DNA from: Kudoa neothunni
Taxonomy: Eukaryota > Animalia > Cnidaria
Reading direction: 5' to 3'
DNA: 64,000 bases
NCBI GenBank assembly: GCA_964304625.1
Contig: OZ199838.1
Span: forward strand, 8,081,550-8,145,549
In this document: one piece after another, positions 50,768 through 57,396 of the stretch
How positions within the stretch are numbered: position 1 is the stretch's first letter
Layout of the letters: each line of letters begins with the position of its first letter
The notes under the pieces: model-generated
Database searches by the model: none
Seen by the model: the letters and a program-made list of their open reading frames with translations, nothing else
Told to the model about the DNA's origin: nothing
Position numbers and translations under genes: made by a program

Positions 50768-53218
50768 CCTTCTAAAGTCGCCAAAAAACCATCCTCGGAG
50801 GTCTTTTGGGGTCAATTTGACCCCAGATTATTATTTGCTAAACTAATTACAAAAATTGTTACCAATTCAATTTTCCGATATTTTCGATTTCTATCGACTA
50901 GTTTTTCAGTAAAACAATGTGAAACATAAAAATTAATCCTGTTAAATCTTTTACGTAATTATTCGTAAGCTGTTAGGAAATGATCGTACATGTAAGTCAC
51001 TGTTTAATAGCTAATTTATTGTTTAAAATTATAATTTGGGGTCAATTTCTGGGGAAAATATTTTTATTTTAACTTTAGGTAAGCAATAACTTAATACATA
51101 CCCGGAAATAACAATTCTTATTTATTTTCACTTAGGCCGTAATACTTTTTCAGTTGGTTTTTTATCCCAAATTTATATTTTCACCTCGTGTTAAACTCTA
51201 ACTAAACAAATATCGATGAGTGATTACAGCGAATTCAATAGTGAATTAGAATCGCCAGGAAGCGAGCCTGACGACTGCTTTTTGGATTCATCAGTAGATT
51301 CATCCGATTCAATGGAGACAACGGTATTGACAAGCTCAAATCTTAGTAAATCAGGAATTGCATGGGACCCCAAAATACCTCAAACAAAACGCACTTCGGC
51401 GGAAAACATTTTGAACCCCTCTCCTGGTCCTACCGCATATTGTTACCAACGGATTCACAATATTCTGGACAGTTTTTCCATATTTTTTTCAGAAATTATC
51501 TGTAAAAAATACTCGATTGCACAAATCTGTTTGGGAAACATTATTTGAAGGATGACTGGATAGATATGGATTCTATCGAATTGAACGGTTATTTGGGGAT
51601 CCTCATTCTATTAGCTCTACACAAGGATCGTGAAGAGCCATTATCTGAATTATTCAGTCTATCAGAAGGTAGGGAGATATACCGAAATATTTTTTCGAAG
51701 ACGCGCCTTAAACAAATCACAAGATGTCTCCATTTTGACAATTATTCTACAAGGGCGGAAAGGAAACAAGTGGATAAGTTTTGTCCTATACGAGAATTAT
51801 GGGAAATTTTGTCAAGGGAACTTCCGAAGTATTTTTCGCCGAATGAGGATGTGACAATCGATGAACAGTTAATTGCGTTTAGAGGGAGGTGTCCCTTCAA
51901 ACAATATATGCCCCTCAAACCGGCAAAATACGACATCAAATTTTTTCTAGCTGTTGATCCGGCTGAAAAGCATATCATTAATATCTTACCGTACCTCGGG
52001 AAAAATAATAACTCAAACCAACGCAATACAAGAGTTGGGGAAAATATTGTGTTATCACTGTCGGAACCTTTGTTCAACTCTGGGAGGAATATCGTTGCTG
52101 ACAACTTTTTTTCCTCGGTTTGCCTTGCGTCTAAAAATAGAAGTCTTTTCAGCACCACATTTGTATTTTTCCAAAAGAACATGCTCACCTCTTATGTGAA
52201 TAATGAATAAGAGTGTTATAATTTTGTCTACGGAAACTAATAATGTAAAAATTATAAATGATTCTCATAAAAAAATACCTGAAATTATCACATATTACAA
52301 CAAAACCAAAGGAGGGGTCGACACTGTCGATCGTATGTTGGCGTCGGTTTCAACACGTCGATTCACTCGTAGGTGGCCAATGATCGTATTTTTCGATATG
52401 ATAGATTTGTCACTTATAAATGCGTTCTCATTACATAAAATAATTTTCAATTGCAAATTTAAAAGACGTCGTATATTTTTAAAAGAAATCGCACAAGCTC
52501 TCTATCAACCTCTCATAGATCGTAATTTACAGAAGGGGAAAATTGTCAAAGCAAAATCACCCCATTTAGGGACTCCAACCAACACTTTCCAAATCGCCGA
52601 AAAAAGACGTCGATGTGAATATTGTCCTCGAGGAACCGATAAAAAAACTCAAACCAAATGCTCCTGTTGCAATAAATACTATTGCTCAATTCATTCATCA
52701 AAGAAATGTAAGAATTGTTAAATTAGTTAGATACTCCGAATAAAATTTTACAAATTTATATAGTTGTTTTTTTTGCATGAGGAATATTTAGTCTTCAATC
52801 TATCAACTGAAATATTATACGCGAAGTGTTATTTTTTTGTACGATAACTTGCGAAGTGGATCCGAGACTACTAGTAAGGTATTAACACGGATTAAATGTG
52901 ATATTAATTATTATTTTACCAAAAAATGAGTCAATAGAATTCAAAATAAACACGTCTCCACTTTTAAAATAATTTTTATAATAATATCATAAAATAAAAA
53001 CTTGGGGTCAATTTGACCCCAAAAGTCCTCCGAAGATAAAAATTTTTTACATATTATTATTGTGATTATTTTTTCCCCTAATTTTATCATTGTTTACTGT
53101 ACACATATTTAGGAAAATAGATAAGAAATCGAGAAATTTTAAAAAGTGCACAAAGAGTAATATTGATTTTAATTTTACTTTGGGGTCAAATTGACCTAAA
53201 TAATTTTTCATTAAGAAA
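50768..53218 (+). mobile_element. piggyBac transposon (decayed), nested in the hAT element
   Basis: Left end TTAA-CCTTCTAAAGTCG. The palindrome GGGGTCAATTTGACCCC occurs at 50808, ~53003 and ~53182. ORFs carry IDEQLIAFRGRCPFKQYMP, ADNFFSS and YNKTKGGVD. The right terminus is degenerate and approximate. Confidence 0.85.
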
Positions 53219-53288
53219 TTAACATATTTATTAGTACTGGACTCTATTCATCTTGTGTTGTATAAAAATAAAGTTTTAAAGACAATTA

Positions 53289-56200
53289 CAGTCGGTGACC
53301 ACTAATTCGTAATGGCTTCATGCGCGCGCGCGAAAAAAAATAACATGAAAATTTTGATTTTACTATTTAATTTTTAAGGATTTCTACAATAATCTGTTAT
53401 TTTTGATTGTATTTGGGGGCTTTCAATATACTCATACACATACAGTATTTCACGATCAAGATGCAAATTGTCAGCGCATGTAGCGCTTATATCCAATCGA
53501 GATGCAAACACGCTTAAAAATGACGCAAAAAAACTATTATAATGCCTTAAACTTACAACGAACGAGCAATCTAATTGTTTATTTCTTCACTTCTCAGACA
53601 TGCTGAAAAATATGACTTGGAATGTCGAATATAACTTTGGCAGTTGGCTGCTGAGACAACTCTTTAGCTTAATTTAATACATTTAAGCAAGTCTTCATGA
53701 GTTTTTTGGGCCTGCCTTTTCAATTCACACTCTAACTGATTGAAGACTTCCCCAATGGGGTTTAGCATGGGGGAATAAGGCGGCAATAGGAGTACTTTGT
53801 TCCCGCCATTATTTATAATGCTCCTAACATCATCTGTTTTATGGAAGGTCACATTATCCATGATTATCAAGTATTTTTTATTTTCTGTAGCCAAATCATG
53901 GATGGAAAAGTTGGATTAAGAAGTCGCAAAAAACAGATTGGTTTACACCACCTCGATGTAGCTTTAAACCGCATATTTTAGTGGTGCTCATCGCCGCAAT
54001 TAGGGTGATATTTTGCAATATGATGGTTTTTACTCTTAAGTCGACTCTTGTTCCACAAAGAGATCTACCTTGGGATCGACGTGTTGCCAAAGAAAATTCG
54101 GACTCGTCAATGAAAATCATATCTGAGTACGCTGGCTTAAGGGTTATATATTCGTTGACATAACTAAATTATAATTACTATATAAATTAAGTCTTAATTA
54201 TTTTGAATCTTAGAAGAATCGTTCGGCAGTATTCCTATCAATTTACACTAGAAAAATCTTCTAAGGGGTTTAATGAAATTCATTTAAGATTCATACTATT
54301 ACTTTTATTTGCGAATGCATGCTAAACCATTTGAAAAAGTAATATGACAATTGATTGATACATGAATTTTCGAGAATTTTGTAAACCGCACGCGCAAATT
54401 AGCATCATGTCCAGCGATGATTCGTGTTTGTCAGATATCCAAGAGAATAGTTCTAAAAACATAAGAGCCTATAAATTAACTCCTCCATCAACCATAGCTG
54501 AAATTATAATTAGACATAAGGTATTAATATTCGAAAATATAGTTAATGAAATAATGGTATAGAGTGGCATGACTAATCGAGGAATATCAAGTGATCTAGG
54601 CGTACATGAGGCTACAGTTGAATAATAAAAAAATGTAATAAGACTGGTTCTTATTGTCGAAAGGAAACTGGTGGTGATCATCGCTCATTATTAAAAGAAG
54701 AACATAAACAATTCATTCTTCATGTGATTGATGAAAATTGCACATTATCACTCATCCACTTAGCCGATAAAGTTTTCCAACGATATAATTTAAAAGTATC
54801 AAGGCAAACTATCCAGAGAACACTTAACGAGTTTCATTACACCCTTAAGAAGGTTTCTCTTGTCCCAACTGATAGGAACTCCCCCAAAACAATCTGCTTG
54901 AGGCTTGAGTAAACAAATCTTTGTCTTATCTAAATTATTATAATTTAGTTATGTCAACGAATATATAACCCTTAAGCCAGCGTACTCAGATATGATTTTC
55001 ATTGACGAGTCCGAATTTTCTTTGGCAACACGTCGATCCCAAGGTAGATCTCTTTGTGGAACAAGAGTCGACTTAAGAGTAAAAACCATCATATTGCAAA
55101 ATATCACCCTAATTGCGGCGATGAGCACCACTAAAATATGCGGTTTAAAGCTACATCGAGGGTGGTGTAAACCAATCTGTTTTTTGCGACTTCTTAATCC
55201 AACTTTTCCATCCATGATTTGGCTACAGAAAATAAAAAATACTTGATAATCATGGATAATGTGACCTTCCATAAAACAGATGATGTTAGGAGCATTATAA
55301 ATAATGGCGGGAACAAAGTACTCCTATTGCCGCCTTATTCCCCCATGCTAAACCCCATTGGGGAAGTCTTCAATCAGTTAGAGTGTGAATTGAAAAGGCA
55401 GGCCCAAAAAACTCATGAAGACTTGCTTAAATGTATTAAATTAAGCTAAAGAGTTGTCTCAGCAGCCAACTGCCAAAGTTATATTCGACATTCCAAGTCA
55501 TATTTTTCAGCATGTCTGAGAAGTGAAGAAATAAACAATTAGATTGCTCGTTCGTTGTAAGTTTAAGGCATTATAATAGTTTTTTTGCGTCATTTTTAAG
55601 CGTGTTTGCATCTCGATTGGATATAAGCGCTACATGCGCTGACAATTTGCATCTTGATCGTGAAATACTGTATGATTCTAATTTAGCTAATTCATCACCT
55701 AAAGAGTAACCAGCACTTTTGAAAATTATTTTCAAATTTTCTACAAAAATTAGAGCATCTTTAGAAGTGAATTTAGGCTCCGCAGGTTCGTCCTCTACCT
55801 CTTCGGGCTCGCTAACGATTTCCTCGTATGAGACGTTCTCTAAATTATCACATACGGGAAAAAACTTTCTTCAATACCTAATTCATCGACTTCTTCTAGA
55901 GATATGGAACTATCTGGAGATAAAATTTTATTGGAATTTTCTGGTTCATTTACGGATGTTTTTAAGCTGAAACCAGATTTAGAAAAACAATTAATAATCG
56001 TTTCAGGAACTAATGAATTCCAAGTATCCTTAATAAGAGTCATTGTTTCCCATAAATCTAGAGGTTTTATATCCAGTCCAATTTCTGCACGAAGCGTATG
56101 TCGCCTCGTTAAGTTTTTCCGGTCTGTTGCCATAAATGAACGAATAACACCTTGATCCATTGGTTGTAGGACCGATGTGGTGTTTTGGGGAAAATATACT

Positions 56201-57396
56201 ATTTGAACGTTGGAGGGTTTCATGTGTTGATGGCAACTTGCGTTGTCCATAAAAAGAACAATTTTTTGGTTTCTACTTCTGAAAATACTGTTAAGTTTTA
56301 ACAGATAATTTCTAAAAATGCTTGCTGTCATCCAGCCTTTCGTGTTGTACTCATAGGGAACTGGAGTAGCATTTATACTTTTAAAGCATCTAGGTCGGAC
56401 ATGATGACCCATCACTAAGGGGTCTAGTTTTTCGCCATTCATTGAGGCTCCAAGTAGTAATGTGATCCTTTTTCTGACTTTTTACCACAAGACATACTAT
56501 TTTCAGTAGCAGAAACATAACTTTTTTCCTATAATAATATAGATAAATACTTAAGCAAAAATAATTGATTGTAGAATATTGTGGAAGTAATACTATTAGA
56601 AAAAATTTTTTCATTTAATGTATGTAAAAATATCTAATCGAAACAAAAATAACCATTTTTAAGAAAAACTTACGAGGCGTTGATTGATAGAACAGTGCGG
56701 TCTCGTAGACATTGTATATTTGATCCTCTTTATAATTTTCAAGAATTTTAAGAAGTTGAGTCTTCCATTCTGTGATGATTCCTATGGGTGCCATGTTAGC
56801 ATCGCCATGAAAGCTGACTTTTTTTAATTGAATTTATTTTTAAAGCCGCGAAACCATCCGTAGCTAACATTTTTGAAATCGTCATCAGAAGCACCGATCC
56901 CATTTCTTTTATTAATTATTTCGATGGACGATAATTCGATACTTTTCGACCTCATCCAAATGAACCACTCATAAATACGTTGATCGGCTTCTTCATCTTT
57001 TCGTTTCCGCATTGATCTTCGTTGGGATGGAAGCAATTGATTCTCAAATGCTTGTGTAATTTTAGCCCTTTTTTCTAAAATGCCATTTAATGTTGAAATA
57101 TAACCTATTTTGAAGTGTTTTTTAATTTCCGTCTTTCTATTTAAGGGCGGAAAACTATCATAATATTTAATTATGTCATATTTCTCTTGAAGCGTTCTGA
57201 ATTTGTGAATTCTTTTTTCGGGCATTTAGAAATAATTACGAATTATCGGTTAATACACACTTTTAAAACTTTTTATTTGACAAAATATTAAAATAACTCG
57301 TATATTTAATTGACAACTCATAATAAACGTTATTTGACAAAATTAACCGAATGGATAAAGTTTTAAGGGATGTTACGAATTAACGGTCATCTACTG
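53289..57396 (-). mobile_element. Tigger/pogo transposon, interrupted by the fold-back element
   Basis: TIRs CAGTCGGTGACCACTAATTCGTAA and (reverse complement) CAGTAGATGACCGTTAATTCGTAA. ORFs 56824-57225 (HTH) and 55840-56442 (MDNASCH, QPMDQGVI). The C-terminus LES-YVYEYIESPQIQSKITDY is continuous across the insertion. Confidence 0.9.
53443..55670 (+). mobile_element. Fold-back Tc1/IS630-type (DD34E) element with ~734-bp inverted arms
   Basis: 53443-54175 is the reverse complement of 54937-55670 except for one indel. TA TSD on both sides. Transposase motifs FIDES, IMDN..FH and LPPYSPMLNPI. Introns at 54521-54562 and 54909-54948. Confidence 0.93.

Follow-up and report, generated by a model that had tools for sequence, protein, structure and literature searches.

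A Tc1-type fold-back transposon of Kudoa neothunni with a catalytic exon in each of its long terminal repeats

Canonical Tc1 transposons have a length of about 1.3 kb, carry one transposase gene and end in terminal inverted repeats (TIRs) of about 30 bp (PMC7325037). Here, we describe an element of different anatomy in a stretch of 64,000 nucleotides from the cnidarian Kudoa neothunni (assembly GCA_964304625.1, contig OZ199838.1, positions 8,081,550 to 8,145,549 of the forward strand). This whole stretch is called the window in the following, and coordinates given without a prefix refer to it. Like canonical Tc1, the element shows a TA duplication, CAGT termini, a helix-turn-helix head and a DDE_3 catalytic domain of the DD34E type. 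Unlike Tc1, it is a fold-back of 2.2 kb with coding terminal repeats, and it holds the catalytic exon twice, once in antisense. Very probably, the unit in the window is a dead element, present as a single copy, which belongs to a small Tc1/IS630-type family with a DDE_3 DD34E transposase and with the fold-back as its normal architecture.

Tc3 and the Sleeping Beauty-type elements with inverted repeats/direct repeats (IR/DR) are Tc1-type transposons with long TIRs. Minos is a further relative of this kind (PMC7325037). The element described here resembles all of them in having terminal repeats of several hundred base pairs with short motifs at which the transposase is predicted to bind. The repeats of these long-TIR elements are non-coding, whereas the arm of the Kudoa element beyond its outer 65 bp is the catalytic exon. 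Furthermore, elements of the IR/DR type have a second binding site at the inner end of the TIR, while the motif is found here in the outer 65 bp alone. Tec1 and Tec2 of Euplotes belong to the Tc1/mariner superfamily as well, and have TIRs of about 700 bp and three open reading frames (ORFs) (PMC7325037). They share the superfamily, the TA target and the repeat length of about 700 bp with our element, but they are 5.3 kb long and their three genes include one for a tyrosine recombinase. One of the Tec ORFs may lie within the repeats. In the long-TIR relatives that we checked, the repeats are not described as holding the catalytic domain, and in a limited literature search no Tc1 element with a catalytic exon inside homogenised TIRs was found.

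The arms of the Drosophila elements FB and Galileo consist of non-coding tandem subrepeats. The fold-back transposons FB, Galileo and Tetris (PMC4079207) are similar to the Kudoa element in that they consist largely of inverted arms of great length. In contrast to FB-like elements, the arms described here are without direct repeats of 20 bp or more (the repeat finder returned no such family in 52500-56700), and each arm is an exon encoding the DDE domain. Arms that gene conversion keeps nearly identical for a long time, with a sharp edge of the converted tract, are also known from the palindromes of the human Y chromosome and from the inverted repeats of plastids. As in these, the arms of the element are nearly identical to each other while they diverge from their homologues elsewhere. 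Y palindromes and plastid repeats are, unlike our 2.2-kb mobile element, fixed structures of tens of kilobases to megabases.

The two arms of the window copy, 53443-54175 (733 bp) and 54937-55670 (734 bp), flank a core of 761 bp (54176-54936). The repeat finder reports them as two abutting blocks of perfect inverted repeat (53439-53952 with 55161-55674, and 53951-54175 with 54937-55161), and they differ solely in a short run near 55161, where the right arm has one additional G/C. The element has a length of 2228 bp, two thirds of which are terminal repeat. It starts with CAGT, ends with ACTG and has a TA at each side (53441-53442 and 55671-55672). The right arm comprises, on the plus strand, the end of intron 2, exon 3, the 3' untranslated region (UTR) and the terminal repeat. 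The left arm mirrors this right end on the minus strand and consists of terminal repeat, 3' UTR, antisense exon 3 and the last 12 nt of intron 2. It contains the minus-strand ORFs 53664-53894 and 53896-54120, and Pfam finds a DDE_3 match in this arm, too. The outermost section (53443-53508 on the plus strand, mirrored at 55605-55670) is composed of a terminal core, i.e., the first 25 nt, and two copies of a short direct-repeat motif (53458 and 53499), which is confined to the outer 65 bp of each arm. Terminal core and short direct repeats are likely to be the binding sites of the transposase. Within the core, a left (54176-54285) and a right inner segment (54826-54936) enclose a unique loop (54286-54825, plus strand), in which exon 1, intron 1 and the larger part of exon 2 are found, together with about 120 bp of sequence ahead of the start codon.

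The element lies inside a fragmentary pogo/Tigger copy on the minus strand (55675-57225, the left part continuing at about 53285-53438), for which Pfam matches to DDE_1 (55843-56442) and CENP-B_N (56827-57225) were obtained. Both flanks of the fold-back match at least 11 Tigger paralogs at 94-96% identity, with 6 bases between the two matches. Reading the empty site directly in 11 of these paralogs gave CATATG in nine cases and CATGTG in one, and the window reads CATA, then the element, then TATG. Because the paralogous empty sites hold a single TA within CATATG, the TA is the target-site duplication, and the outer CA..TG is Tigger sequence and not part of the element. A target preference beyond TA was not seen, as the other fold-back copies show no CA..TG pattern around their TA. 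The minus-strand frame of the Tigger copy crosses the reconstructed empty site and ends 22 codons later; overall, the copy is split into several ORFs.

The original prediction for this locus, which had been made from the letters of the window alone, is confirmed in its observations, while its interpretation holds in part. Its coordinates and counts for the arms, the core and the extra G are all correct, the insertion into a duplicated TA at CA-TA-TG is borne out by the empty sites, and a sense and an antisense catalytic exon do lie at the two ends of a genuine TA-flanked insertion of Tc1/IS630 type. The continuity that was claimed for the Tigger ORF holds for the frame across the empty site, but not for the Tigger copy as a whole, which is fragmentary.

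As a perfect palindrome is the typical signature of a fold-back chimera or of a missed adapter, an artefact of assembly or amplification has to be considered. It is extremely improbable here, because the loop of 761 bp is unique, the termini are canonical CAGT, the TA is duplicated at a position where 9-10 paralogs show the empty site, the flanks keep the same orientation, and five further full copies lie on three chromosomes. For practical purposes, such a chimera is excluded.

Loop and right arm together encode a gene of three exons with GT..AG introns on the plus strand, as judged from exon boundaries, reading frame and conservation between copies. Exon 1 (54407-54520) has 38 codons and is open. 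It is followed by intron 1 (54521-54562, 42 nt) and by exon 2 (54563-54908), which encodes the helix-turn-helix DNA-binding region. Intron 2 (54909-54948, 40 nt) contains the edge of the identical arm at 54937, 12 nt before the 3' splice site, and exon 3 (54949-55542) encodes the DDE_3 catalytic domain of DD34E type. In separate Pfam searches with each exon, exon 2 of the window copy matches HTH_Tnp_Tc3_2 at 22.9 bits and exon 3 matches DDE_3 at 50.7 bits. The distance from the second D to the E, counted on the open ORF of a related copy (L004, see below), is 34 residues, as in a Tc1-like DD34E transposase. This is in line with the Tc1/mariner-IS630 group, for which a TA duplication, a DDE_3 domain of DD34E type and an N-terminal helix-turn-helix region are all present. 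The window element with its 2228 bp and arms of 733 bp does not match the typical Tc1 anatomy, but this anatomy is a norm and not a criterion of membership. As a side observation, both introns are 95-98% identical between lineages, compared to 87-94% for the exons (window copy, L004 and L005), so that the introns seem to be under stronger constraint than the coding sequence.

In the window copy, the gene is damaged at several positions. Near 54620, exon 2 has lost 4 bp, by which the frame is shifted and stops come into frame; the other four copies compared have 4 more bases at this position. The extra G near 55161 affects the right arm alone. Two further lesions, a 4-bp duplication near 55212 that causes a frameshift after LFHP, and the exchange of the catalytic E for G (NPIE to NPIG), occur in both arms. 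As the original prediction had noted, they are shared by the arms, and we find that both are missing from the other copies. The window copy is thus dead and unable to make its own transposase.

A genome-wide search for further copies, as it had been suggested for this element, was carried out on the 40-Mb genome and returned five full copies at different TA sites. Four loci match the full 2.2 kb at 89-91% identity, namely L002 and L003 (C2), L004 (C1) and L005 (C3). The fifth, L038 (C1:16072571-16076258), has a length of 3.7 kb and represents a fourth lineage, with arms like those of the other fold-back copies plus an insert of 1.5 kb. Altogether, six full fold-back copies, the window copy included, fall into four lineages and all show the same architecture. 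The five other copies are distributed over three chromosomes, each with its own flanks. They have a TA at both ends, where one base of a flanking TA is changed in L004 and in L005, and the terminal CAGT of L005 is changed to TAGT. Each of them is palindromic with arms of 780-865 bp. Solo arms are present as well (L018 and L019).

Two of the relatives deserve a separate remark. The arms of L038 show an identity of only 88.8%, and its left arm is separated from its core by about 1.5 kb of unrelated DNA. Positions 1389-1720 of L024 (C3, about 2484750-2485080) form a mini-palindrome of pieces of the fold-back arm, with arms of 107 nt that are 97% complementary. The match of L024 begins at position 52 of the window element, and the terminal 51 nt have no counterpart. 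It seems to be a deletion derivative rather than a complete miniature inverted-repeat transposable element (MITE).

L004 shows what a working form of the family may look like. Its exons 1-3 are open, and the same ORF of 181 amino acids is found in both arms. The exon 3 ORF matches DDE_3 at 97.3 bits, and exon 2 matches HTH_32, HTH_23 and HTH_29 above the Pfam cut-offs, with HTH_Tnp_Tc3_2 just below. The arms of L002, L003 and L004 are 98.4-99.1% identical to each other, so that this lineage must have moved recently. When substitutions are polarised with three lineages (window copy, L004 and L005), the L004 branch carries 18 synonymous and 9 non-synonymous changes (omega about 0.1), while the branch of the window copy carries 6 synonymous and 23 non-synonymous changes (omega about 0.9). 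The L005 branch has an omega intermediate between these two, and dS between lineages is 0.18-0.24. The L004 lineage is thus under purifying selection. The palindrome was already in place as the lineages diverged, at least one of them was selected for a working transposase, and the window copy comes from a drifting lineage. Since all full copies share the architecture, and among them a constrained lineage with open exons, the long coding arms are best regarded as the normal terminal repeats of the family.

A short-TIR version of the fold-back lineage was not found in the 40-Mb genome. The short-TIR kin that do occur there (L029, L031 and L032) have a length of 1.23-1.26 kb and TIRs of 24-32 bp, and show about 65% DNA and about 55% protein identity to the fold-back lineage. 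The first 25 nt of their termini are identical to those of the fold-back family, which points to a common binding specificity and to possible cross-mobilisation. In other species, the nearest proteins in public data show 63-66% identity, and the contigs that carry them measure about 1 kb; one of them, L066, is a canonical element of 1.28 kb with 27-bp TIRs. These proteins are uninformative on the age of the fold-back. It had been proposed that the unit in the window is a non-autonomous derivative of an autonomous parent with short TIRs. The first part of this proposal stands insofar as the window copy is unable to make transposase. The parent is absent: the genome holds no such short-TIR form, the kin with short TIRs belong to another family at about 65% DNA identity, and the copies with open exons have the same long arms.

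The relation between the two arms was followed in five closely compared copies (the window copy and L002-L005). Within a copy, the arms differ by 0-2 substitutions in about 650 columns (99.7-100% identity), compared to about 9% between lineages. In 91 variable arm columns, both arms of every copy are concordant, 33 of these columns being private to the window copy and 28 private to L005; discordance between the arms is limited to about 8 events. Nor does the identical tract end at a constant edge. In the window copy, the left arm has about 25 nt of right-type sequence at this point, in L005 the right arm has left-type sequence, and in L002-L004 each side retains its own type. Concordant columns and shifting tract edges together lead us to infer that the arms have been homogenised by repeated arm-to-arm gene conversion in both directions. 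One arm site reads T/C in L002 and L003 but T/T in L004, and here conversion seems to be visible inside a young subfamily. All 22 private exon 3 changes of the window copy are found in both of its arms, and as this branch looks neutral, homogenisation would be independent of a working gene. As to the extreme ends, the copy number of the terminal direct repeat varies from 1 to 3 among copies and is unequal between the two ends of L003 (C2:4920413-4922568) and L004 (C1:13393744-13395887). Because of this inequality, the outermost 70 bp or so do not seem to be homogenised in all cases.

The age of the palindrome can be read from the part of it that is no longer homogenised. The left inner segment (54176-54285) aligns to the reverse complement of the right one (54826-54936), which covers the last part of exon 2 and the greater part of intron 2, with a score of 31. 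Among 2000 shuffled sequences, the mean score is 9.1 and the highest 17, so that none attains the observed value. In all five copies, left and right inner segments are 58% identical, while segments of the same side are 88-100% identical between copies. Further inward (54286-54825), no left-right similarity was found. A divergence between the sides that is equal in all copies, with each side conserved between copies, argues for a single ancient origin of the inverted duplication before the lineages split, after which the inner part would have escaped conversion. The original duplication would then have spanned at least 845 bp, from the end of exon 2 across intron 2 and exon 3 to the right end.

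The same data bear on the question whether the second arm was gained recently and locally, by template switching or hairpin repair after the decay of an ordinary element. The window arms, 100% identical and with two lesions in common, would fit such an event, and the original prediction had concluded from the shared lesions that the duplication post-dates decay. We consider this very improbable. The same arm-core junctions and the diverged inner segment are present in four other copies and in the distant L038, and the distinct flanks exclude that these are assembly duplicates of the window locus. Moreover, all five compared copies have nearly identical arms although their lineages are 9% apart, and a local duplication fails to explain why changes private to one lineage occur in both arms of every copy. 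The palindrome appears to be ancestral to four lineages, and the lesions are presumably common to both window arms because of arm-to-arm conversion. Of the two ways of arm copying that had been considered, gene conversion is favoured by the substitution pattern across copies, and a recent template switch at this locus is not.

We therefore prefer to regard the fold-back as the regular form of the family, with the following history. The TIRs of about 735 bp, originally at least 845 bp, each include the complete third exon, whereas the DNA-binding exons occur once, in the loop. The palindrome would have arisen a single time, when an inverted copy of the right 850 bp either replaced the original left end or came to lie outside of it. 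Since then, intramolecular gene conversion between the arms would keep the outer 735 bp identical and would halt at the sharp edge in intron 2, where the inner 110 bp are too diverged. The window copy has inserted into a Tigger copy at a TA. It was probably mobilised in trans, with a transposase of the family recognising the terminal 25 nt and the short repeats next to them. Then or earlier, it would have decayed without constraint, and conversion would have spread the arm lesions to both sides.

Some points weigh against this history or at least against parts of it. The exon-intron model is a prediction from splice signals, frame and conservation. Gene conversion is deduced from the substitution pattern, in which conversion in place is indistinguishable from gap repair after excision. 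Both the perfect identity of the arms and the single extra G were read from the assembly, where consensus polishing could in principle smooth small differences; L001-L003 nevertheless retain indels and mismatches between their arms, as expected if the arms had been resolved separately. Finally, a search for the canonical 5' subterminal motif upstream of the start codon, where a relic of the original 5' TIR might be expected, gave a match of 21 nt. While the score for L004 was reached by 2 of 2000 shuffles, 107 and 295 of 2000 shuffles reached the scores for the other two copies examined (the window copy and L005, in either order), in which the match is not significant, and such a relic is only weakly supported.

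A different role for the palindrome would follow from a comparison with maize. Mu killer is a rearranged locus distinct from the transposon MuDR, whose read-through hairpin RNA gives rise to small RNAs that silence MuDR (PMC3440606). By analogy, the window copy had been proposed as a candidate silencer locus, whose read-through transcript would form a hairpin RNA of about 730 bp from the catalytic exon, which is diced and silences the family in trans. A perfect coding inverted repeat of 733 bp would indeed yield long double-stranded RNA if transcribed from end to end, and read-through hairpins of Tc1 inverted repeats trigger RNA interference in C. elegans (PMC3878927). Like Mu killer, the fold-back holds an inverted partial duplication of a transposase gene, with exon 3 in both orientations. 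The genome also has two genes with PAZ and Piwi domains (C3:4677181-4678911 and C1:898178-900327), which are the sole PAZ matches.

Nevertheless, a silencer of this kind is quite unlikely. Mu killer is a single locus, whereas the inverted duplication is found here within the mobile element itself and in all of its members, and the silencing RNA is only a prediction. The fold-back is the standard form of every full copy rather than a derived allele distinct from an autonomous element, an observation which the original prediction had itself named beforehand as one that would refute silencing. In addition, the constrained lineage has three copies of 98-99% identity, so that the family has transposed recently despite its supposed killer structure. 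As to the machinery, no RNase III, Dicer dimerisation, third PAZ or RNA-dependent RNA polymerase (RdRP) domain was found in the 40-Mb assembly. For Ribonuclease_3 (PF00636), Ribonucleas_3_3 (PF14622) and Dicer_dimer, there was no match at E-values up to 1 in a six-frame search, which may miss diverged or intron-split genes; for the RdRP family, there was no match at E-values up to 1e-5 in a search run without a positive control. Another myxozoan expresses Dicer (PMC10454682), and because of this and of the limits of six-frame searches, the absence of Dicer here is suggestive but not proven. Both Dicer and Drosha may have been lost from the genome. A PIWI route fed by antisense transcripts of the arm is conceivable.

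Returning to the fold-back as the regular form of the family, nothing shows a function for its antisense half-gene. For the Y-chromosome palindromes, repair from an internal template by gene conversion has been proposed. In a similar way, the mirrored catalytic exon might be used by the element, either as a conversion template that slows the decay of the transposase, or as a source of antisense or hairpin RNA that limits the family via the PIWI pathway, but we regard such a use as unlikely.

Other repeats lie around the element. The Tigger/pogo host belongs to a young and abundant family, of which no fewer than 11 members (paralogs L042-L052) are 94-96% identical. A repeat unit of about 147 bp (53050-53196), situated just to the left of this Tigger fragment, recurs in at least 25 further places of the genome with 79-97% identity and probably represents a MITE family or one similar to short interspersed elements (SINEs). 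At 51545-52721, two adjacent plus-strand ORFs match the piggyBac-type domain DDE_Tnp_1_7, the second one with a cysteine-rich tail. This broken piggyBac copy adjoins the nest of Tigger and fold-back element.

As one dead copy of its family, the window locus is of modest interest in itself, and it is the architecture that deserves attention. A textbook Tc1 has one gene and ends of 30 bp, but the family described here suggests that an autonomous Tc1 element can hold its entire catalytic exon inside terminal repeats of 735 bp, and that such arms can stay identical by conversion across lineages with a synonymous divergence of about 0.2. For annotation, this means that a perfect coding palindrome in a transposon need not indicate a recent rearrangement or a silencer locus. 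With 2.2 kb and several independent copies, the family offers a compact natural system for measuring conversion between inverted repeats, and it allows us to ask whether coding palindromes protect or silence a gene. If the mirrored exon should be in use after all, it would represent a new strategy of self-maintenance or self-regulation for a cut-and-paste transposon.

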